Source: Obrimoposthia wandeli (taxonomy: Eukaryota). Taken from it: DNA of 64,000 nt. The notes under the pieces are model-generated. The model had not been told where the DNA came from and did not search any database. It saw only the letters and a list, made by a program, of their open reading frames with translations. Location: positions 62,001 through 126,000 of the forward strand of contig CDROCS010000186.1 in the NCBI GenBank assembly GCA_977020255.1, given 5' to 3'. Positions 41,800 to 56,660 of this stretch are shown here, one piece after another. A program made the translations under genes and the position numbers. How positions within the stretch are numbered: the first letter of the stretch is position 1; each line of letters starts with the position of its first letter.

Positions 41800-43424
41800 T
41801 TATACAGTTTACATTGTATAAAGATGAATACATGAGGTCTATTTATGAAGAAACATTGATAAATGTTAAAGGTACAAGAAAGTTAGACAACCATACTAAT
41901 TGCTTGTATGTTGAGACAAAAAGAGTCGATCTCACAAGAGATAGTGTTGAATTTGTTGGAACAACTTTACGTCAATATTCAGTCCTACTTTTGTTAAGTT
42001 CCAATGAGCTACAATTCTTATGACGGAATAAACGTCAATCGTTCTTCTGTTAATTCTTCGCGAAATGCAAAAATCATTGTGTAAAAACCCTTCTAACTCG
42101 CTAAATTTCTTATGCGATGTATCGATACGATTTTTCTAAGATTTGGCTAGTGCACTTGCTGGTCCTTGATGGTGTCGTCCTGATTACCTCTGTTCGATAT
42201 GAATATCTGTGACAGCGTCGATTTGGTATGGTCTCCCTCTGGGCTTCAGTGACTGTTACATGCTTGATCTGATCTGTATTGATCGGAGTCGTCACATTCT
42301 ACAGTTGAAATCCCATTAACTGGTTTATTATTGATGTCAATGATATAAAAGAATTCATAGCTTCCCTGAGTCTTTGTACTAAGGATTCGCCGTTTATCTG
42401 GCTATACTCTAATCTCTATATTGCTACATCAAATACATTATTTAATTGTTCACATTCCATCTCTTTGTACTTTAATTGATCTTTAGTGATCTTAGTTTGA
42501 ATTATATTTTTATAAGCTCTAGTTATGTATGTTGCTGCATAATCTATATGTTTTTTGATTGTTTTTTTGTATATTTATCAACTTTGATTAATGAACAAGG
42601 ACGTCAAAAAATCGTAGTTTGGTATTGTTTATATATCTTAATTTTGTCAGATCTCTATATTTACATTATTGGTTTGTTAGGAACATAAGGTAAAATTGAG
42701 TTTATCCTGTAAATGATTGTTCTGTTGTTCTGTAAGCAATTAAATCAGGTGCTATGTGTAAGTCCCAATCTGGTTAATTGTTATTTATGTATGAAGTCAT
42801 CTTATCCTCAAAAATTATATTAAATCTTTCAACTAAACCGTCTGTTTGATGGTGGTATGGTGATGTGTTCATATTTTTATTAGAAATTAGAAGAAAAAAA
42901 AGCGATTGATCCTAAAATATGATTTATAAATTCTAAAAAATCGATTATAACTTTTACACAATTAATTCACAAAATCGATTATAACTTTTACACAATTAAT
43001 TTCGTTTATATTTCTCACAAGTATTTCTGTCTGAGTGCTTCTTCGCGAACTAATGGATGCAGAGTATGCCTGTCTGAGTTCTTCTTCACGAACTAAGGGA
43101 GTTTGAGTGCTTCTAAATAATGGAGTCTGAGTTCCGCGACTAATAGGTTCCCGTTCTTTCTACTCAATTAGTTTTCAACTTCCTTTTCGAAATCCATGCA
43201 TCCTCCCCCACTAGAATTGTCTTTCTCTGTCCCTTCTTACACCGTTCCACTCATTCTACACACATTTCCCCACGGCCTCTTCACGGTCCTAATTTATTTT
43301 AATTCGATATTTTAATTTAAAATCAATTTATTTTTAATTCATTTCGACCTTTGGTTTTAAGGTTAAATTTTTAAAATATAAATAATTATTTTATTTATCT
43401 TATTCAATTTTCCTTAATCTAACA
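41800..43424 (-). mobile_element. Gypsy remnant: truncated LTR related to X1/X2 (43424 to ~42900) followed by degenerate integrase
   Basis: The minus strand starts TGTTAGATTAAGG at 43424 and has an AGGACCGTGAAGAGGCCGTG variant of the X1/X2 motif. At ~42700-42870 it reads TSPYHHQTDGLVERFN..WD..AYRTT..TG..FYLMF (Gypsy integrase core). Confidence 0.65.
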
Positions 43425-44789
43425 AAATTAAAGATTGAATTTTAAAGATTTATTACTTTGAGCACTACCTTTGGCAACTAGTGTGTAATTTTTGTTGTTG
43501 GCAGGTCTCGATTTTCTTGGAAAGCAAGACTGTTCTAGACAAAAATTAAAATTATATGATCAATATTTAAAATATAACTGATCAAGTTTATTTTATTTCA
43601 ACGTCTTTAATTGAAAGATTTACTCATATTTTCGGTTTCGAATACAATTTCAATTAAAAACTAATTCAATGAAAAATGCATTACTTTATTAGGGATTATT
43701 TATGTACTATAGACGTCAATTGATATTATTTGAGCTGTCTCTGTTGATGTTTTTAGTTTGACATACCAGTCGGCCTTTGGAACTCCGCTCGTCGATAGCT
43801 AGTGTTTAGCTTTTTGTGAACAGAACCTCAAACGTCGATAAACGGTCTTTTCTTAAAACTAAAATTAAAATAAAACGAAACACAACTCAAATTACAAAAA
43901 TTGGAGAGTTTAATTTGAATATGTTTCGCAAAACTAAGTTATAAATAGTTTGTGAGAGATCCTAACTTACTTTATCTTATGGTTGTGGAAAATGTGCAAG
44001 TAAATTGAGATATAATTGTAAAATTAAATGTATATGTACGAAAAATAAATAAATGGCTTCTATAGTAAAGAATATGTAAAGTGATGTAAATTAAAAAGTT
44101 AACTGTAATATTCGAAGAAAATAAAAATATTATAAATAAATGACTTATATATCAGAAAATTCAAAATAAAAAGTGAAAAATAAATTATTTATATCAGTAA
44201 TATGAAAAATTTAAAGGATTAAGCACAATATATCTTAAAAAAATATACAATATACAAGATAATAAGTGAATAATATATTTTTTGAACTATGTTTTCTATC
44301 GTATACCTAATTCAAAAGTTTAATTCTACAACACAATTGATGTTATATAGGTTTAAATACGAATTCATAAACAAATATTGCCAGTTGAATATATATGGTC
44401 TCAGATTACATAACTAATTACATAACTAATATAAAAAGTTAAGCATAAAATGTAACAAAATAAATGAATAATAGATTGTTTATATTAGTAATGTTGGGAA
44501 AGGAAATTTTGAAAAAAATAGTTGGTAAAAATTTACATTAATTAGAATATTTCCTTTATTAGGGTTTGATTTTTGGCTTTGAACTTATGCACTTTGGCAT
44601 TTTAATTTTAATATATATGTATAATCCATGTATGTCATAACATAATCCATATAAATATCCACTGCTACCATTGTGGGGGTTTCCAATATCAAAAATATAG
44701 AGATAACCTTTTTTAACTGTATTTAATTGTACAAACTTTCTCAATCATAATTTTTCATTAATATCGTTTTAATATCATTTCCTAATTAC

Positions 44790-47700
44790 ATTTTCCCCAC
44801 CTTGATCCAACTAGATCTAAACAACAACAAAAAACATTCTTTCATTAACACCTGAAGACTTATTCAGATAGATGGCCTAAACTTACCACTTTAAACTCCC
44901 TGCTCTCCGCTTAATCTACACAAACGTACAATCGATTTTGTCACTATCTTGTCTTCACATAACAGCTTCACCACTCTTCCTTTGTAGATCTCCAAGACCT
45001 TTCCTAGCGGCTATTTTCCTCTTTCAGTCGTCTTTTCTAGGATCATAACAATATCATTAACCTTAAGATTCTCTTTCTCTTCCAGCCATTTCTGTCTATC
45101 TGCCCACATAGGGACTACTTCTTCCATCCATCTTTTCCACAATCTTTCCACGATATCTTGCATCAATCTCTATCTAGCTCTCCAACCTTTTGCGTTGCCG
45201 AGTAGGACGTTATTTGCCACTCCATCTAATCTTAAAAAATCATTAGGCGTCGAAGCCCTAAGATCCTCTCCATTTCCGCTAACGTAACTCAACGGTCTAT
45301 TATTCATCAGGTTCTCCACTTCAAACAATATGGTGTTGAATTCTTCATCTGACATTTCGGCATTTTCCGTCACCTTCCTCATCGCTCGCTTTACGGATTT
45401 TATCATAGCCTCGAACACTCCACCAAAGTGTGGGCTATTTGGTGGATTGAATATCCATCTTATCTCTTCCTTAAGTAATTTTCTCTTCAGCGCATATCTG
45501 TCTATCTTTACATCTTCAACCTCTCTCGCGGCACCTCTGAAATTAGTGCCGTTGTCAGATATCATAACTTCCGGTCTACCTTTACGTCCCATAAACCTTT
45601 TTAGAGCTCTGATGAATCCATCCGTGTCCAATCCGTACGTCATCTCGAGATGTACTGCTCTTGTTTGTAAACAGGTAAATAAACATATATACAGTTTTTC
45701 TCTTACTTGCCTCCTTCCTTGCTTAGTCAAGAAAGAACAGGCGAAATCTACTCCCACTCTCGCCAAAACTCCGAGTGGCTCCTCAAACCTTACATTGGAG
45801 CCGTCATTTGCTGCATGCTTTGAGCCTTAGCTTTTTTACATATTATACATTCGGTTTCGACTTTTCTTATTAATTGTCGTGCTTTTATTATCCAGAAATT
45901 CTTCTGTAGCTGTTTCAATAAATGTTGAACTCCAGCATAATGATAATTTCTATCATGTAGGTTTCTAACGATTAACTTTGCCAGCCATCAATTATTATCG
46001 GAAACTTCTGATCGTAGCTTAAGTACTCTGCATTTACTAATCTAGAACTCGATCTTAATACACCTCGTTCATCCAAAAACGGGTTTAATTTTAATATCGT
46101 ACTACATCATAGAGTCTCTTTCTTGTTCACTAGATCCTTTTTTTTTTCATAAAACATCTATTTTGATGATCAATGATCAATTTTTCCATTGCATTCTTTA
46201 ATTCTTCTACCGTTAATTCTCCATAAACCCATGATTTCTTCTTCTCTTGACAGTTTCTGATAAATCGATCCATCCAAGCTCTCACCTTTCTTAGTTTCAT
46301 TAAATTCGAGTATCTTTCGATTTCTAATCTCTCTTGTTTTACTTGGTTGACAAACAACATAATTTTCAATTCTGCATCTTCCTTCTTCTCAAACTTCTTA
46401 TCTATTGGCCACCTTGTAGGTTCAGACTTTAAATACTCTGGTCCTTCTCACCACTTAATTGTAGACGCACATTCATTTGCACTCATTCCTCGTGATAACA
46501 TATCGGCTGGATTTTCCTTCGTTGGCACATATCTCCATTGACGAATATCTGTCTCTTCCTGTATTTTTCACACTATATTTGCGACGAATGGCTTATATTG
46601 TCTCCATCGCTGTTTGATCCACCATAATACATCTTCGCTAACCGTCCAAAATTGTATAACTTTAACATTTTCATTCCATGATATCGCTACTTCTTTAGCC
46701 AATTTTACTCCTTCAACTGCCGCCATTAATTCTAATCTTGGTACACTAACTGTTTTCAATGGTGCGACTTTCGCTTTTGCATCAATTAATTTTACTTCTA
46801 CCTTTTCAGCTTCCTTTGTCCTTACATATGCAACTGCACCAAAAGCTTTTATGGATGCATCTACAAAAACATGAATTTCCATTTCCTTATTCTTTGCTAT
46901 TTTTATCCATCTAGTTATTTTAACTTTCCGCAACTCTTCACATTGCATAAGCCAATCCATAACTTCTTTTTTCAAATCTCCTCCTATTTCTTGGTCCCAT
47001 TATATTCCTTCGAACCATATCTTATGCATTAGCATCTTTGCTCTTATAGGACAAATCCTAATGGATTGAAAACAGTTGATAAAATACTAAGAAACTGCTT
47101 CTTGGTTACTTCAGATCCGTATTTTTTCTCACTTTGAAAAGTAAAGTAGTCTTCACTTGAATTCCATCGTATACCCAACGTCTTTACTTGTCATATTCCA
47201 ACTTCAATCTGAAGAATTTTTGCTTGATCTGCTGTGGGGATTAACTGATTCACTTTTTCACTACTAGTGATCCATTTCCGCTTCCATCTTTGCCCCTCGC
47301 CATATTTCTTTTAATTCCTCAATGGTCTTGGTTACTTTTTCTTCTGTATCCACCGAACACAACGTGTCATCCAAATATGTATTTTCCAAGATTAGCATTG
47401 CACTAGATGGATATTTTGTCAGAAATCTTTCTGCATTTTCTCTAGTCACCATTTGTGCTAAGAAAGGTAAGGAAATTAATCCAAATACCACTCGTTGTAT
47501 TCAAATGTGGTTATTTCTCCTTTATCGTTACTCCATAAAAGTCTTAACCATTTACGGTCAGCCTTGTCCACTTTCACCTGCAAATACATTTCAGTAATGT
47601 CACAGACTAAAGCTATTTGACTCTTACGAAATTTCAACAGAATCTCCATCAAATCTCCCTGCAACTTAGGACCACAGTTTATGTAATCATTAAGACTCTC

Positions 47701-50349
47701 ACATTATTCATTGCCGCTGCATTGAACACAATTCTCACCTTTGTAGTTTTTCGATTCCATTTTACTACTGGAAAATGTGGAAAGTACCACTTGGTATTTT
47801 TATCTTCTTCTGGTTTTACCTCATGTATATAACCTTTTCCCTTCTGTTAATCGATTATTAATGCATACTTCTTAGCTAAAACCGGATATTTGTTTAATCG
47901 ATTGTGTAAACTTTGCAATCTCTTTATCGCCATTTTTATTAACTTCAAGTTTCCTAACCCCTTTTTTCCATTGAATTTTCACTGTATATCTTCCTTCTTC
48001 CATTACCATCACCTTAGCACTACTTTCATACATTCCTTTTTCATATTTCGTCATTGTATTACGTTCTTCGAGTAGATGTTCTATTTCCCAAAATTGACGT
48101 AGTTGGTCATCTAACTCGGTGTTACTTTAATAACTTCTAATGAAATTTGTTTGGTTGTTATATATTGTTTTCTGAATTAGCCTTTCCTACACATATCCAC
48201 CATAATGGTGTCTTTTGTGCAATCGGATTCTTAAACCCTCCCATTGTTCTTCTAGATATTTATGCATCTCTATCCAATCGGCACCGATCAGCATCTATAC
48301 TGCTCTCCCATTATTCGTAGATAGAAAGTGAACATTTTGTAAATACTTCCAATTCTTTCCTTCCTAATTCCAATTTACTACTCGTAAATCTCCAGTGACT
48401 TCTTTTATTGCCAATGTTTCTACATTTCGTCGAAAGGATCCACTCAAATTTTGTACCTGGAAAGTCCCTAACCTACTTTCTAAATCTTTTTTTCTTCTAC
48501 CAATCACTCCAATTGAAGTAACATTCTTCACTCCTTTTAAACCTAAATAATCAGATGCTGCCTGACTGATGTAGCTAACGGTGCTTGCATCATCCAATAA
48601 TGCATTTATTTTAATTTCTTGTTCTCTATTTTTAACGACAACCGGCACCGTTCTTGATGTCACCGTTGAATTCGTTCTACTACCCACATGTATAGACGTA
48701 TTATTGTGGATTTTGTTAATTTTAGTATCTTCTCTTGTTCTATGTAACAGCCAATGGTGCTTCATCGTACACTTATTTGTTTAAGACAGCTGTTCTCTTT
48801 TACAAAATTTTTCCCCAGTGACCTGGTTTCAAACAATTTCTACACAGCTTATTTTCTTTTACTACGTTCCATCTGTCTTCTAACGTCATTCTTCTTAACT
48901 TTTGACACTGATCTGTATAGTGTGACTCCACACAATTATTACACTTTTTCCATACTTCGACTCCCCTTTCGTTCTTTTCCATAGCTGGATTTACTGTTGT
49001 TGCATTGCTCAGGAATGCCTTTCTTATTGGTTCACGATATTTATTATTAAATATATTTTTGTCGAATCTCCGTTCTCCGACCTAGTTCTTTGCTATACTT
49101 TTATTTTGTTCATTTCTTGACATACTTCCTCTGCTTCTTGCAGATCTTCCGTTTTTTGCTGGGCTCATATCAGTATATCTTTTAGATAATCTGTTCTATC
49201 TTCTTGTCTCTTCCAACTTGTCTATTCTAACATTGCTTGTCGAGGTAACTTTCTTAAGAATGTTTGATATAAGTAGCCATTCCTCGAATCTTCTGTCTTA
49301 TTCAAATTCTTTAACTTAACTAGAGTTCTCTCTAACAACTCTGTGAACTTTTCAAATCTTGAATTTCTTCGCTTCGAATACCTTTAAATTCATTCACATC
49401 TTTTAAGATATTCCTATAGCATCTATCCTTTCCACCGTATCGTCTTTCGAGCCTTTCCAGAGCGATGTCATTAGCCTCTGATGACAACCCCAGATTATCT
49501 ATTAATCTTAGAGGCTCTGGTTCCAAATATTGTCGCAGATGGAACAGTTTACTTGTTTTTTCAGTTTTTACATTTCCTATTAATTCTTCAAATACTACTC
49601 ACCAACTCTCATACTTGTTCTGTTTTCCTTAAAATAAAGGCAGACTAAGCTTCCTAAGCCTTGTCATCCTCTCATTAGTACTGATAGGTCTTCTATAGAG
49701 AACAGACTCAACTTCTCCTGCCTCTTCCTTTTCTTCTTTCCAATCCTTCCCTTTCCGAAGCTCCATAATATTTTGACTCGTTATTTCCTATTTCTTCTCC
49801 ATCTCCTCCATCTCCTCCAATTCTTCATTTAGTATTTCTGCCTTCTGCTTATTATCATTTTGTTCTACCTTAATTTTAAGTTCTTACATGAAGCATGTAC
49901 ACACTTCATACGCCTTTTCATATTTATCTAAACATCAAACCCACTCTTCCTTTCCTGATGAACTGAAAAACATGTTCCTAGCTCTCGTCACTTTACTCTT
50001 CAGCACCTCTCCTGCACTTCTCCATTCCATCCCTCCCTCCTTTTAAAGCTAACATCAACTGAATGTTAGCACTTCCTTTTATATTGTAATCCATTAATGT
50101 ATTTCTATCTTTCAACAGCTTACCTGTAAATATCAATCTCTGTTGAACTGGGGGAATACATTCTTTCTCTTGAATTTGTATTTTTAATTTTTTGATAGTG
50201 TCGTATGATCGACTATCTATGGTTATTGTTTTTCCGGTCAAGGTTTTAATAAATATTTGAATATATTTTGACTTGAACTTCTTTTTCTTTATGGCTGAGT
50301 CCACAAAACAGTCTTCAGTCGTCTTTATTTTATTAAACCTTGCGGACAT
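44790..50349 (-). mobile_element. BEL/Pao LTR retrotransposon, degenerate gag-pol, 5' LTR not found
   Basis: Domains in order: DUF1759-like gag (KLSLPLF..KLFHLRQYL), CCHC knuckles (48750-48982), aspartic protease ALLDDASTVSYI, RT (DITEMYLQV, YLDD), RNase H (HVFVDASIKAFGAVAY..SVPRLEL), integrase (GVDFA..CLQTRAVHLE..SDNGTNF..FGGVFE) and a DUF5641-like tail. PPT AAGGTGGGGAAAA is followed by TGTAATTAGG at 44790. Confidence 0.92.
49993..50349 (-). CDS. Ubiquitin/NEDD8-like domain immediately upstream of (probably once fused to) BEL/Pao gag
   Basis: IQIFIKTLTGKTIT..EKECIPPVQQRLIFTGK..TLMDYNI..LMLALKGG has 44/76 identities to ubiquitin by manual count. A di-Gly is followed directly by gag-like sequence. 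Confidence 0.88.
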   Translation of the reverse strand: MSARFNKIKTTEDCFVDSAIKKKKFKSKYIQIFIKTLTGKTITIDSRSYDTIKKLKIQIQEKECIPPVQQRLIFTGKLLKDRNTLMDYNIKGSANIQLMLALKGGRDGMEKCRRGAEE

Positions 50350-50636
50350 AATCCGTCGACATTCTCTAATAACTTATGTCTGCTAATGTTAAAAATATTG
50401 TTATTTATCCCCAAAAAACACTGTTGATCAAAGTAGGGGTTACGGATGAAAAATATAAATTCAAGGATATATTTTAATTAAATTTATGGGTTAGAAAGGG
50501 TGGTGGTACCACTTAGGCGCCACCATTTCCCAAAAATTTATTTAATAGAAGAGGTGGTGATCCTTTGATCAAATGGGCGTCACCAGTTCCCGACGGAAAA
50601 GCAAAAAATGTAAATTAATGTACTATTCTCACTTAC

Positions 50637-51010
50637 CACATTTTCAGCTTGTTCACGATCACGCAGGTATAGTTGTAACTCCAAGCATTGGTCCAGCTGC
50701 TTTTCACGGTTCAACAGGCATCATTTAACTGTTCTCTAACATCAGCGATGCCCTGCAACTTCTCTTTGATTTCGCCTTCTGCATAGTGACCAGTTTTCAG
50801 CAATTCGTTACCGAAATCTTCAAAATTGTGAAATGTTCCAGACCTAGCTTCGATTTCAGCTTGATGCTCCCTATGTCTCTCGTGTAAAGCTTCAGCGCCA
50901 GTGACGTATTTTGCAAGTTTATCTGAGTTCACGAGACCCGTCATTGTATTTATTCATGACATTAGATCACTATAGTCGGCCAAAAACTTCTGCAAATCAA
51001 TGGAATTAGT
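50637..51010 (-). pseudogene. Isolated alpha-spectrin repeat fragment with premature stops
   Basis: DLQKFLADYSDLMS*INTMTGLVNSDKLAKYVTGAEALHERHREHQAEIEARSGTF..GHYA..KQLDQCLELQLYLRD.EQAEN follows non-erythroid alpha-spectrin. Two Trp positions are TGA. Confidence 0.85.
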
Positions 51011-51053
51011 AGATAGATGTGTCCAGTTCCGGTCACCTCCCCCCCTAGCGAAA

Positions 51054-51058
<5 letters not shown>

Positions 51059-51093
<35 letters not shown>

Positions 51094-51930
51094 TGGGTGG
51101 AAATTTTAAATACATACTATAATACTTAATTTTTCTAAGGTCAATGTGAAAAGTAGGTCAAATTTTGTTATAGTACACATGATTTTTGAGGGTTAAATTC
51201 ATATTTATGTCACTTTATACTATAATACGTCTGTTTTTAGCGGATTTTACTCTAAAATTAGATGTTTTTGTTTAAATACATCAATTTTTATGCCCGCAAA
51301 TTTCAAAACATACTATAATACCTCATTTTTCTAAGGTCAATGTGAAAAGTAGCTCGCATTTTGTTATAATACACATGATTTTGAGGGTTAAATTCATATT
51401 TATATCACTTTTTACTATAATACGTCTGTTTTTTAGGTGACTTTTTCTCTGAATGTATAAGTTTTTGTTTAAACACATCAATTTCTATGCCCACAAACTT
51501 AAAAACATACTATAACACGTATATTTTTCAAGATAATTATTAATGAAGGTCACATTTTGTTATAGTACACATGATTTTGAGGGTTAAATTCATATTTATA
51601 TCACTTTATACTATAATACGTCTGTTTTTTAGGTGATTTTACTCTGAATGTATATATTTTTGTTTAAACACATCAATTTGTATGCGTGCAAATTTAAAAC
51701 ATACTATAACACGTATATTTTTTCAAGATAATTATTAATGAAGGTCACATTTTGTTATAGTACACATGATTTTGAGGCTTAAATTCATAAGTAGATCATT
51801 ATGTGTTGTATTACGTCTGTTTTACTCTAAATGTATATCTTTTTGTTTAAACACATCAATTTTTATCCACGAAAATTTAAAAACATACTATAATAAGACT
51901 ATTTTCAAGATCATTATCAGATGTGTTACT
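51059..51930. repeat. (TA)13 microsatellite followed by a ~196-bp tandem repeat (~4 copies)
   Basis: TA run at 51059-51084. TTTTGTTATAGTACACATGATTTT recurs at about 51163, 51359, 51555 and 51750. Confidence 0.9.
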
Positions 51931-52111: not shown

Positions 52112-55100
52112 TCATTCATTCATAATATACTCATCCGGATGAAGATAATGACCATATGCAACTGACCGATTCTTTTCAACCCATTTTCGCTTATCATCCG
52201 CACTACACAATGCTATTTTAGATAAATGCATAGTATATAGCTGATGATTAACGGAAGTTATAAGACTTTGTTGAACACGCTCACATATACCTGTCTCATA
52301 AACAGCTAAGTAATTCTCGTGTTTTAAATTACTCTGTTTAAGATTAATACCCTTTGCTCTCATATGTGATTCATCATTGATAGTTTTTAGGCTATAACAT
52401 TTTGGACGAAGAAATATACATTCCGTATAAGTACAAATACCCTTACTTTCATCTGTAAACTTTCCTATCGCAGTGTTAGCTGTTGAATAAAGAGGGTGAT
52501 TTTTAGGATACTTAGATGTATCTAATAATCCTTCAGAAACCATTGCTGGTAGCAATTGTGCTTCTACATCCACATTTCTACATTTCAAGAAGAAACTGTC
52601 AGTATCCCCAGCAACAATTCTAATATCACAACTAAATTCCTGACGATATTTCTCAAGTTGCACGTACTGGAGCTCATACATTCGCAATTTGCTAAGATCT
52701 AGTACTGCCTGCCCTATATAACTAGGCCTATCCAAACAAATCATGTCTTTATTCAGTAAAACAGCTATTAGATCAGAATCTATTTCTATAGTGCGTTGAA
52801 ATTGCGCCTTACTACAATAAGTAACTAGTTTTTGAGACGTATTACAAATCCTTAAATTAATTCGCTTTTTCAAATTCTCAATCAATTTTCCGAATAGCGA
52901 ATTAACTTTCAGCTTATAATAATCTCGTTCAAAATCATTAGTAGCAGCAGCCCTTTTTGTTGAATTGTCTTCTATATACTTTGCAAAAACATTGGTTTGT
53001 GCAAACCGAATTGCTCTATGCAGGAAATCTATTTTAGCCCCAAGCCTCAGATACATTTGAAGCAAACGAGAATGGACAATGTAATGCTTCTTTGGATAAG
53101 GAGTTAAAAGTAATTTAGAAGTACGACTTCCAGGCGGGCAATCCTTACGTGGAGCTAAGGGAAGATCGTCAAGTTTATCATGCAATTCATTCGGAATACT
53201 TATATCTACTTCCATTAAATGAGCATAATCACTACAGCTTAGTCTTTATATGAGAGCTCATGAATTATTACTTCTAATTCCAATCGGTCAGTTACCCAGG
53301 TAAAATCTCCAACCGGTAAAAATTGGGACATAGCCCATCCATAAAGATTGTTAACATCAATATACAAAATAGTATCACCATCAGAGTTAGTAATCTTATG
53401 TTCGTTCACAAAGGTCATTCCTCCACGAATACCTTCTTCAAACAGTCGATGCATCTCAGGATCTTGAATCAATTCCACAGTAGATCCACCTGGAACCCTC
53501 GGTCTTTCTGCGCTTGACTCAGTACCCAGTAATGACTTGAAAGCGCTTGCAAATGTTAAACCTATGTAAAATTAAATAATGAAAAATAATAATAATATCT
53601 AACCTGGGATAGAGAAGAAATTGAGTGGTTCCAATCCATCATCAGCGATAGCCTTCTCTCGAAATGTTGTAAACACATCCGCAAGTAGATATACATCCAT
53701 TTTGAGATATACCAACATATAGTCCCAAAGATATTCACACCCACTCTCGTGCCAAACTTTCTCCGCCAACTCATATTGTTCACTTTTGATCTTCCTATCC
53801 CATTTTGATGGAAGGCTTGTTATTGATCGGAGAGCACTCTCTGATACCGCCATATCGTATGGAAATATCCCTTTACCATTCACAAGATGAGGTTGAAAAA
53901 CAGAATGTGTCAATGGAATGGAAACTAAGTTTTCCACGAGTTTTTCAAGACTACTATTCAAAAACTGCAATGAATCGATGAATCGAATACAAACTCCTCC
54001 AATACGCACTATCATTACTTGGAATTTTTCTGTTGATTGAGGTATAACAGAGACATTCCAGTCAGAAAAGTTGCTCAGCGCATGTTTGAGAATGTGATGG
54101 AGATCATACCCTCTCAGGTTATGAAACACCACTGGGAGAGTACGATTCACTCGTCTAGATAAATTGCACTTACTGTGAGCAGCTCCAAGGTACTTACCCA
54201 TCATATGATCATGGTCTCGTACCTTTTTAATGCATGTCTTATTACAGAGGTAACAACTAGTAGCTGATTTAAAACTAGCTATTTGCTCAGGCGTAAGTGT
54301 TTGCATAACTTCCGCTGCATGTCTCTTATACCAAGGCAAAACAACTGTCTTTACCAGCATTTCCAGCTTGGAAAGAAAATCAACAACACAAGTTTCACCA
54401 GTGAAAAGCAAGTAATATTGAGTGTATCCTGTTGCAGCAATTGGAGACATTAACATACCGGCTGCAATCGGGAGATGAATTTGATGATGAATGCCATGGG
54501 GTGGGAGAACTGATTCAAAATCCCCGTAAACAACAAATGGTGGAGAAATCGTTTTTGAAAAATCTGTGAATGAATATATTTGTCCTCCGGCATCTGGTAT
54601 AGTGTATTATGTTCCATATTCATCATACAAAGTGGTTTATGCTTCTCAAAACTTATTGCCCGTCTAAATCCATGAAGACACCATATACATCGAATTCGTG
54701 TAGAACCTTCTTCTTTGTTATAATAGATTAGAAGCCTACTAAGATTTGGAACTGCAACGTAGTGATATTTCTCTCCTTCTTCTAACAGAATCAGATTAAC
54801 TGGATTGCCGCCAGGATTGGTGGTTCGATATAATATATCAATAAAAGGATTCTTAAAAATATCCTGATCCGGAGAAGGAATGATATTGATGTGATTGTAA
54901 GTGAATACATTTATTGATAAGGATGAATTCTCTCTTTCGAAACGAGGAATATCATCTAATCTCATAGGCATATCGTTTAAAGAGTATATCAAATCTCCTA
55001 AATATGCATCATATTGTGAGACTCTATACCTATGCTGAGATATAATATCGTACTTCAGAATAGAAAGGATGCTATAGATAAAACACAAAACACCTGTATT

Positions 55101-56005
55101 CTGAACATTCACAACCGAATTGTGAAGTTCATTTGGCGTAGAAATATATGCTTTTCCTTGAAGATAATTAATTTCCGTGGTCTTAATGATAATAAAATTT
55201 ATCTCCAGGATGCGTTTGAGTTGCCAATTACTGGCATTCTGAGAATACTTTTCAATCTTAGCATTGAGAGACTCTATACCCCGACCAACGAATTCAGGTG
55301 AAAAGAAAGTAGCCTTGTTTGAAACATTCCATTGTTTCACACCACTCTCATTCTCGAACTCCACCTGGAGACCGAATTGCACCTTACAAGATGCGAATTC
55401 TTCAACTTTTACTCTTAAAGAGTCAATAAAGTGCTGCGGCACATCTAATTCAATAACATTATCGCTAGTCAAATTCAACGATAATGTCACATAAGACCCT
55501 CTTAGTCCTTTCTTTTCTCTAACAATCCCTAATCTCACACTCTTAGCCGCAGATGCACCACTAGTTGATGGCATCGCGCTTGTCGACGGGGGCATAATCC
55601 GTTTTTGTGCAGGTATTGTACTAGTTGAAGGCATAGCTGGAGGAGAAATCGGCACAGGAGTAGATATACGATCAGGATTGAATGACATTGAGACTTTATC
55701 AGCTTCGGAAGTTGATTTAACATTTTGTATTCCCTTTTGATTGAAAACTATATTCTTCTTTCCTTTAGCTCCAAAATATCCTAGATGTGATTGATGTATG
55801 GAAACAAAAGCTCCCCATTCTTCTTCAGCCGCTTCACATTGAGGACATATATAGAAAATACGTCCATAGAACTTTGTTCCAAAATACTGCTGCATCTTGG
55901 TTTGGCAAATCAAATGGTATTGATTAAAGCAAAGATTTTTGTTAATATTGCACTAAAATTATAATTAGTGAAGTAATATAAAAATAAATTACTTACATTA
56001 GTCAT
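52112..56005 (-). pseudogene. Near-complete protein-primed DNA polymerase B (copy B) with N-terminal zinc finger, endonuclease VII-like module, two predicted short introns and two frameshifts
   Basis: Motifs: VYGDFES, CYLC..VRDHDH..CNL, VFHNLRGYD, YLKMDVYLL, LYIDVNNLYG, KLKVNSLFGK and VAGDTDS. Predicted ATG at 56005 and introns at 55953-55996 and 53562-53603. Frameshifts at ~54575 and ~53230. Stop at 52112-52114. Confidence 0.92.
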
Positions 56006-56283
56006 TTTGTAATCAATTAAACACTAATAATTCTTTTGTTTATAGACGTTGTTACATTTATAGTAATTTATTGTTTATATTTCAAGTTCTTTGTTAAAAA
56101 TAACACAGTAAAACAAACATAAATTTACTATGTAACTTTTTTAAATAATAATTTTATTCCATTTTACTTATAGTAACAACAACAAAAAGTTTTATAAGCA
56201 CAATTTTTCCCATGCTCAATATATGAACAACTAATAATTGATGGGATCTGTGAAAGCCCTTTCAATGTTTTACAGAAAATTCA

Positions 56284-56660
56284 CAAGTTTCTAATTTGTT
56301 TGAAAGAACAAGGAGAGTTGGTGAACACATCTATATTAGGACATGCATGTATGTGAATATGTGCATGTTCTGATTTTGTTGATGCAATTATATGTAAGTT
56401 TCTAATTTGTTTGAAAGAACAAGTAGAGTTGGTGAACACATCTATATTAGGACATGCATGTATGTGAATATGTGCATGTTCTGATTTTGTTGATGCAATC
56501 ATATGTAAGTTTCGTATTGGATGACAAGAACAAGGAGAGTTGGTGAACACGTCTATATTAGGACATGCATGTATGTGAATATGTGCATGTTCTGATTTTG
56601 TTGATGCAATTATATGCAAGTTTCGTATTGGATGACAAGAACAAGGAGAGTTGGTGCATG
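56284..56660. repeat. 111-bp tandem repeat, ~3.4 copies
   Basis: Unit starts recur at 56284, 56395, 56506 and 56617. Confidence 0.92.

Follow-up and report, generated by a model that had tools for sequence, protein, structure and literature searches.

A ubiquitin domain in frame ahead of Gag in a BEL/Pao retrotransposon lineage, and its possible role as a host-cleaved leader

Introduction

When a ubiquitin-like domain lies directly upstream of a retrotransposon gag gene, is it a part of the transposon, and what might it do there? The question is raised by a stretch of 64,000 nucleotides (nt) from Obrimoposthia wandeli (assembly GCA_977020255.1, contig CDROCS010000186.1, positions 62,001 to 126,000 of the forward strand), hereafter the window, in whose coordinates positions are given unless another contig or copy is named. 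A BEL/Pao element occupies its minus strand from 51007 down to ~44620, and a first-pass annotation made from the sequence alone had described it as carrying a ubiquitin- or NEDD8-like domain fused to the N-terminus of Gag. We followed this domain through other copies in the same genome and through distant relatives in metagenomes, and conclude that the family and its clade almost certainly have ubiquitin as an integral, conserved and in-frame component. The reading we favor, at a probability of roughly 0.6, is that the family encodes a leader-ubiquitin-Gag polyprotein in which host deubiquitinases (DUBs) would cut after the terminal Gly-Gly (GG) of ubiquitin, freeing Gag.

Results

Identity of the ubiquitin domain

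In the window, the domain (IQIFIKTLTGKTITIDSRSYDTIKKLKIQIQEKECIPPVQQRLIFTGKLLKDRNTLMDYNIKGSANIQLMLALKGG, 50262-50035) is enclosed in a stop-to-stop frame at 50373-49996(-), within which an open reading frame (ORF) beginning with ATG spans 50349-49993 and encodes 118 amino acids (aa). It matches Pfam PF00240 with E=3.2e-22 and is 58% identical to canonical ubiquitin; the top 60 PDB sequence matches are ubiquitin in every case and include cellular ubiquitin fusion precursors. The ORF had been described as a ubiquitin fold ending in LALKGG. The fold does end there, with the GG codons at 50040-50035(-), and the ubiquitin is real, but the ORF itself runs past the GG. As also described, Gag-like sequence (..VLKSKVTRARNMFF..) follows within ~25 nt on the same strand, in a different frame (50042-49938(-)), and a DUF1759 match lies further downstream (49598-49335(-)).

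The residues singled out in the first-pass annotation were read correctly: K48 is present, K63 is absent (the sequence reads K62-G63) and Ala72 is present in the window copy. L8, I44 and K48 are retained and V70 is replaced conservatively by Met, whereas Met1 has become Ile in the window family as well as in the related proteins P0003, P0017 and P0272 introduced below. The tail of the family reads A72-L73-K74-G75-G76 and not Leu-Arg-Gly-Gly preceded by Arg72, and the domain is best described as ubiquitin-derived and not as a functional free ubiquitin. Residue 72 is a determinant of E1 specificity, with Arg72 serving the ubiquitin E1. The NEDD8 flavor suggested by Ala72 did not survive the comparison: an origin from NEDD8 was rejected on the uniformly ubiquitin matches in PDB and on the lack of Ala72 in relatives, not on an alignment with NEDD8. 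Since related elements carry R, K or N at position 72 and Ala72 is confined to the window family, this residue appears to be a quirk of the family and not a NEDD8 signature. AlphaFold2 run on the single sequence (pre-ubiquitin, ubiquitin and junction) gave a mean predicted local distance difference test score of 38.6, too poor for use.

Other copies in the Obrimoposthia genome

The genome (1.35 Gb, 30% G+C) was searched with window 49300-50500 as the query. Among 291 first-look candidates, all 40 that were scored span ubiquitin and gag contiguously, at 88-92% identity. Thirty copies were fetched and read in their own frames, and the leader statistics given below are based on these 30. Ubiquitin is readable in every one of them, and in eight a single open frame leads from before ubiquitin over ...LMLALKGG-MDGMEKKYSQKRVLKSKVTRARN... 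into Gag, reaching 554 codons in copy L023; a continuous ubiquitin-Gag frame is what the first-pass annotation had proposed to look for in other copies. In these eight copies LKGG is followed by MDGMEKK, and nearly all copies, when projected onto one natural copy, share this junction. The frame change in the window lies a few codons past the GG and results from an indel, not a multiple of three in length, that is private to this copy when compared with the 29 others, in agreement with the earlier view that a frameshift in a decayed element now separates the two parts. The ATG of the 118-aa ORF is a substitution, found in 2 of 30 copies, the remainder reading RIRSARF at this place.

A chance position of a host exon or of an independently inserted ubiquitin retrocopy beside a BEL/Pao gag is hardly conceivable. 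Such an explanation has nothing to draw on beyond adjacency in one decayed copy, and it is ruled out by the identical junction in every scored copy at unrelated loci, which recurs in distant relatives. No scored copy lacks the domain, and retrocopy hallmarks, the other sign that the first-pass annotation had considered, are not needed as an explanation.

The family is otherwise a conventional long terminal repeat (LTR) element. In full copy L033, the two 254-bp LTRs share 94% identity and have TG..CA ends; the copy also has a target-site duplication of CTTAC and a primer binding site (PBS), TGGTAGCAG..., which we take to match the 3' end of initiator tRNA-Met. Net divergence of ubiquitin between subfamilies is 0.021 at synonymous (pS) vs 0.005 at nonsynonymous (pN) sites, each value corresponding to only ~1 substitution. 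Other families in the same genome match the ubiquitin and Gag of the metagenomic protein P0022 at 35-38% identity, inside stop-free open frames of 614-1108 codons; the younger copies with an uninterrupted ubiquitin-Gag ORF that the first-pass annotation had asked for thus exist. The genome also holds a host polyubiquitin gene (C2160:264817-265452(-)) with a 715-codon open frame, whose repeats are 78-82% identical to the ubiquitin of P0022.

Relatives in metagenomes

A HMMER search with the Gag part alone against 1.84 billion representative proteins returned 1216 hits. The N-terminus of Gag is included in 12 of the best 150, and in seven of these 12 (P0002, P0003, P0013, P0017, P0022, P0025 and P0033) ubiquitin or an LxL[KR]GG tail stands directly upstream. 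An additional search yielded P0272 as a further case; word-based protein searches recovered almost no relatives, P0272 being the exception, and a scan of metagenome DNA returned only three BEL/Pao Gags, all ubiquitin-less. The Gag of the relatives is only ~30% identical to that of the window family and their ubiquitins are 50-80% identical to ubiquitin, yet of 9 lineages examined, 8 retain the GG and only the decayed P0033 does not. Matches to DUF1759 are stronger in the relatives than in the window copy.

The residues that follow the GG, S/M-D-x-E..., align one to one with the start ('MSD.E') of ubiquitin-less relatives, which (as in a protein of Mya arenaria) have Met at the position of the second Gly. 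In the sequences compared, the residue after GG is M, S or G and never Pro. In a tree of Gag, the sequences without ubiquitin group in one clade (support 100/99), and the ubiquitin label requires 2 changes, with 0 of 500 shuffles equally clustered; the pattern may be compatible with a single origin. From this distribution, the ubiquitin-Gag architecture appears to be old and common to a deep BEL/Pao lineage, and not a one-off capture in the window copy.

Some relatives carry host-derived sequence upstream of ubiquitin. In P0003 this is a piece of HSP90 (1e-11). P0272 (616 aa) joins, in one ORF, the N-terminus of RPB10 (residues 3-40, 1e-14), a piece of the HSP90 middle domain (226-324, 9e-29), ubiquitin (330-399, ending LCGG) and Gag, and its HSP90-ubiquitin junction resembles that of P0003. 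In contigs L037 and L039 the same PBS as in the window family (TGGTAGCAGAG) falls within the ubiquitin frame or at its start.

Two further sequences were noted on the side. The ubiquitin-less BEL/Pao Gag of L041 (contig Ga0187219_1041413) has an N-terminal stretch (..FLWNGRADKVFITGSYDNWEK..YKYIVDGVW..) that by eye resembles the AMPK-beta/glycogen-binding CBM, which would make it a further insert of host-like sequence in the leader of a Gag. In P0025 (1016 aa), Gag, two CCCH zinc fingers and a protease motif are followed by a CFAP58-type coiled coil (Pfam 1.7e-18), which reflects chimerism of the contig or else a further capture from a host.

The leader upstream of ubiquitin

The fusion of ubiquitin to Gag had been placed at the N-terminus of Gag. 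Ubiquitin does lie in frame directly before Gag; however, the reading frame does not begin with ubiquitin, as a long leader precedes it. The leader opens at an ATG straddling the junction between LTR and PBS (MVAESVVISTE), and the same ATG is found in all three types of leader, A, B and C, that occur between PBS and ubiquitin. Type A holds about two spectrin repeats (Pfam 3e-23 in copy L033), type B a short spectrin remnant, and type C, in place of spectrin, a piece resembling the first RNA recognition motif (RRM1) of PTB (PDB PTBP1, 2e-4). In the window the spectrin part appears as a 77-aa ORF at 50944-50711(-) (Pfam 4.5e-13). The same stretch occurs in type-A copies at many loci, 18 of which share it up to the point at which the window copy is truncated. 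A reading of this ORF as a host exon, followed by an intron with a 'GTAAGT' donor at 50647, was rejected: type-B copies read through this site, and the piece is element-borne.

The leader looks translated, with ubiquitin internal to the ORF, because the ATG and the first ubiquitin codon are separated by a whole number of codons in two leader types (1056 and 591 nt), because stops make up only ~2% of codons in the leader frame vs 5-13% in the other two frames, and because copy L020 has 170 open codons, albeit without an ATG, preceding ubiquitin. The captured fragments follow the same rule. Spectrin and the PTB RRM1-like piece in the window family, and HSP90 and RPB10 in the relatives, are all sense-oriented and in frame at both ends, for which the probability is ~1/18 per fragment. 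With at least three independent captures of this kind, selection on the continuity of the ORF can therefore be argued.

The leader also contains the perfect palindromes TTTGATCAAA and GGTGGTACCACC (window 50500-50590(-)), within a duplicated unit of ~60 nt, and other copies have them at the corresponding position; in copy L030 the unit has undergone additional tandem duplications. The palindromes might be dimerisation or packaging signals, and the leader RNA region would serve the PBS and, probably, packaging. Predicted folding of leader RNA was no better than that of shuffled sequences (z = -1.7 and -0.2).

On contig C2410, at about 102400-109071(-), lies a spectrin gene with multiple repeats and an open frame of 990 codons. 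Over 81 residues, one stretch of it has 79% identity to the spectrin piece of the element, and the captured fragment probably came from this gene. The leader of copy L025 (C1289) holds another host-like stretch (..NSVVLVTNLNAEK..), partly duplicated, which by eye resembles a later RRM of PTB.

The window copy and its surroundings

The window copy (Table 1) aligns with positions 561-6777 of L033 at 89.7%. Homology to 18 other copies, at unrelated loci, begins at window 51007. The copy is decayed, with many frame changes, no 5' LTR and no more than a remnant of the 3' LTR; a search for LTRs within the window found no pair because the copy is 5'-truncated.

Table 1 Features of the BEL/Pao copy in the window
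Feature	Position	Strand	Remarks
Decayed, 5'-truncated BEL/Pao copy, leader type A	44620..51007	-	5' LTR, PBS and first third of leader absent
Spectrin-repeat-derived part of leader	50650..51007	-	Pfam Spectrin 4.5e-13 (50944-50711)
Leader/linker from spectrin piece to ubiquitin	50263..50649	-	two in-frame stops; palindromes TTTGATCAAA and GGTGGTACCACC
Ubiquitin domain, 76 residues (IQIFIKTLTGK...LMLALKGG)	50035..50262	-	PF00240 3.2e-22; PDB ubiquitin ~1e-23
Ubiquitin-Gag junction with private frameshifting indel	49990..50034	-	other copies: GG-MDGMEKKYSQKRVLKSK in a single frame
Gag: coiled-coil N-terminal part, DUF1759, CCHC zinc knuckles; several frameshifts	48803..50034	-	
DUF1759 (PF03564) in Gag	49598-49335	-	Pfam E=3.1e-6
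CCHC zinc knuckles	49081-48803	-	part of Gag
Aspartic protease region, DDAS-type motif (..ALLDDASTVSYIS..)	48367..48780	-	motif read directly; also in relative P0002
Reverse transcriptase and Pao-type Peptidase_A17 region	46571..48126	-	PF05380 5.2e-29 (46999-46571); reverse transcriptase motifs read
Integrase and C-terminal DUF5641	44894..46567	-	PF18701 3.5e-10 (45169-45014)
3' LTR remnant	44644..44738	-	83% match to L033 LTR positions 143-231

The exact truncation point of the element is adjoined by an (AT)n run (~51060-51085) and a satellite array, in which a unit of ~196 bp is repeated in tandem 4-5 times (51038-51921) at 64-86% identity. Beyond it, three successive long ORFs (367, 285 and 487 aa; 52112-55913(-)) encode a protein-primed type-B DNA polymerase (PF03175 in hits) with relatives at 50-62% identity in many metagenome contigs, and are probably a Polinton/Maverick-like element beside the retrotransposon. 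Further along, an ORF at 56281-56619(-) consists of three near-identical units of ~37 aa (..HIIASTKSEHAHIHIHACPNIDVFTNSPCS..), a tandem repeat that looks coding. On the other side of the element, two exact 31-nt direct repeats with a spacing of 34 nt lie at 42937-43001.

Discussion

Ubiquitin as a proposed cleavable boundary between leader and Gag

In the pathway that we propose, translation would start at the ATG over the LTR/PBS junction and pass through the leader with its host-derived coding fragments into ubiquitin, whose terminal GG falls precisely at the position of the initiator Met in relatives without ubiquitin; Gag, protease, reverse transcriptase, RNase H and integrase would follow. 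Cellular DUBs would then cut after Gly76, as they do in natural ubiquitin fusion precursors, releasing Gag with a native-like N-terminus while the leader-ubiquitin part would be discarded. In ubiquitin precursors and in engineered Ub-X fusions, cellular DUBs cut after Gly76 unless X is Pro. A GG followed by a residue other than Pro and by a native-like Gag N-terminus, the pattern expected in the sequence of a DUB-processed fusion, is what the elements display. The retention of GG in lineages whose Gags are only ~30% identical, together with these native-like residues, lends indirect, comparative support to the idea of a host-cleaved leader that sets the N-terminus of Gag.

A cleavable ubiquitin would insulate Gag from whatever the leader RNA encodes, and because of this insulation the leader could carry the PBS and other RNA signals, indels, duplications and host fragments. 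We also consider, at somewhat less than even odds, a more far-reaching version in which a deep BEL/Pao lineage has come to leave the maturation cut at the N-terminus of Gag to DUBs of the host. The translated leader would then have become a free zone, since everything upstream of ubiquitin would be cut away, and would have repeatedly captured in-frame pieces of host mRNAs (spectrin, PTB, HSP90 and RPB10).

A number of observations weigh against the proposed processing. Most of the sampled copies, the window copy among them, are of type A and share in-frame stops in the leader at codons 49, 50, 56, 280 and 282 (the last two at window 50486-50484 and 50480-50478(-)), and no conserved ATG is found in type-A copies from those stops to ubiquitin; type A is either mobilised in trans or its translation initiates otherwise. 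Some DUBs contact Arg72 and Arg74 of ubiquitin, and as the window family has Ala72 and Lys74 at these positions, efficient cleavage cannot be assumed. The related proteins all derive from short metagenome contigs, with start codons assigned by a prokaryotic gene caller. Within the family, the ratio of nonsynonymous to synonymous substitution rates (dN/dS) is powerless with so few substitutions, and a search for sequencing runs of the source organism returned only DNA-type runs, from one study, and no RNA.

Ubiquitin might instead be a permanent, uncleaved domain of Gag that acts via its hydrophobic patch, for instance in bringing ESCRT or ubiquitin receptors, the proteasome or trafficking factors to particles, similar to the ubiquitin-like (UBL) domains of DDI1 and RAD23 or to the ubiquitin-Gag fusions that rescue retroviral budding. 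The retention of L8, I44 and K48, the conservative change of V70 to Met, and the conservation of ubiquitin while Gag diverged to ~30% identity would all fit such a role. Integral UBL domains, however, normally lose the C-terminal GG, which is kept here in all lineages examined but the decayed one; the residues past the GG reproduce the native N-terminus of Gag, and the highly variable upstream sequence, partly made of host fragments, would be odd cargo for a capsid protein. We therefore regard a permanent domain as rather unlikely.

A still less probable alternative is that the ubiquitin stretch is a relic in a leader that is not, or is no longer, translated, with Gag starting at the Met after the GG (GG-MDGMEKK) and the open frames left over from a recent ancestor. 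The upstream stops common to type-A copies, the lack of an ATG between leader and ubiquitin in most copies and the powerless selection tests within the family are all compatible with this, and the first in-frame Met past the domain is indeed the residue following GG. However, relatives with Ser or Gly after the GG have no Met there and still encode ubiquitin, GG and Gag in one frame, the other families of the same genome keep long open frames over ubiquitin and Gag, and the reading frame is kept across both ends of three to four independent host fragments. It is also conceivable, but very improbable, that the released leader-ubiquitin is itself functional, as a ubiquitin tagged with a host module (spectrin, PTB or HSP90) and serving as a decoy or being conjugated to targets. 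Host modules do recur upstream of ubiquitin across several lineages, and P0003 and P0272 have their HSP90-ubiquitin junction in common; yet the modules are fragmentary (partial repeats, a partial RRM), differ between subfamilies and are interrupted by stops in type A, and variation at residue 72 among A, R, K and N argues against a conserved role in conjugation.

If host cleavage of the leader is correct, an inherited, lineage-wide reliance on host DUBs for the N-terminus of Gag would be a new processing strategy for LTR elements, the usual view being that maturation of the structural proteins of LTR retrotransposons and retroviruses is the task of their own aspartic protease. It would also be a natural instance of the 'ubiquitin fusion' trick beyond pestiviruses. 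In the more far-reaching version, the lineage would be a retroelement counterpart to both pestivirus ubiquitin capture and 2A leaders, and its leaders would preserve natural traces of template switching onto transcripts of the host. The variable leader with its in-frame fragments of unrelated host genes offers a route to study the capture of host mRNA during reverse transcription. For genome annotation, matches to ubiquitin, spectrin, HSP90 or RRM beside DUF1759 can be parts of a transposon and not host exons.

Comparison with known systems

The first-pass annotation knew of no BEL/Pao family with this architecture, and full-text literature searches combining ubiquitin with DUF1759, Belpaoviridae, or Pao and gag likewise gave no report of it; a 2011 survey of BEL/Pao elements in 62 genomes never mentions ubiquitin (PMC3118150). 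The backbone agrees with that of known BEL/Pao elements (Belpaoviridae: Pao, BEL, Sinbad) in its TG..CA LTRs, 5-bp target duplication and PBS, in a Gag with DUF1759 and CCHC knuckles, and in the Peptidase_A17 region, reverse transcriptase and integrase with DUF5641. Described members, however, begin Gag at its own Met, whereas here a leader with host fragments and ubiquitin precede it. What appears to be new is the combination of an ordinary BEL/Pao backbone with an unreported conserved ubiquitin module and a capture-prone, apparently translated leader, which would make processing dependent on the host.

Cellular ubiquitin fusion precursors (polyubiquitin, Ub-eL40 and Ub-eS31), which are processed by DUBs, likewise have ubiquitin N-terminal to a partner, with GG followed by the first residue of that partner. 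They start with ubiquitin, whereas in the elements it is internal, has lost Met1 to Ile and has diverged to 58% identity. Proteins of the DDI1/Ddi1 type also combine a ubiquitin-fold domain with a retroelement-type domain, the retropepsin-like protease; DDI1 is a host gene and not a mobile element, and its UBL is a permanent domain without a cleavable GG, in contrast to the GG kept here in a mobile element.

A viral likeness is found in pestiviruses, where host ubiquitin hydrolases liberate a viral protein whose N-terminus directly follows the GG of ubiquitin. Cytopathogenic strains, as of bovine viral diarrhoea virus (BVDV), have captured host ubiquitin coding sequence in frame in their polyprotein (PMC13517609, PMC8310069). 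Captured in-frame ubiquitin with its GG set against the downstream protein is common to both systems, but pestivirus insertions are sporadic RNA recombinants that arise within infected animals, whereas the arrangement described here is inherited and lineage-wide, and its cleavage is one that we infer. Among retroelements, the functional analogue would be the N-terminal 2A peptide (PMC3708506), a ribosome-skipping peptide at the N-terminus of ORFs in non-LTR retrotransposons such as L1Tc and Ingi (PMC3708506, PMC3894237). In both cases a leader peptide would be split from the functional protein without a protease encoded by the element. The 2A peptides act by co-translational skipping at an 18-aa motif, whereas in the BEL/Pao lineage a folded, host-derived domain of 76 aa would be cut by enzymes of the host.

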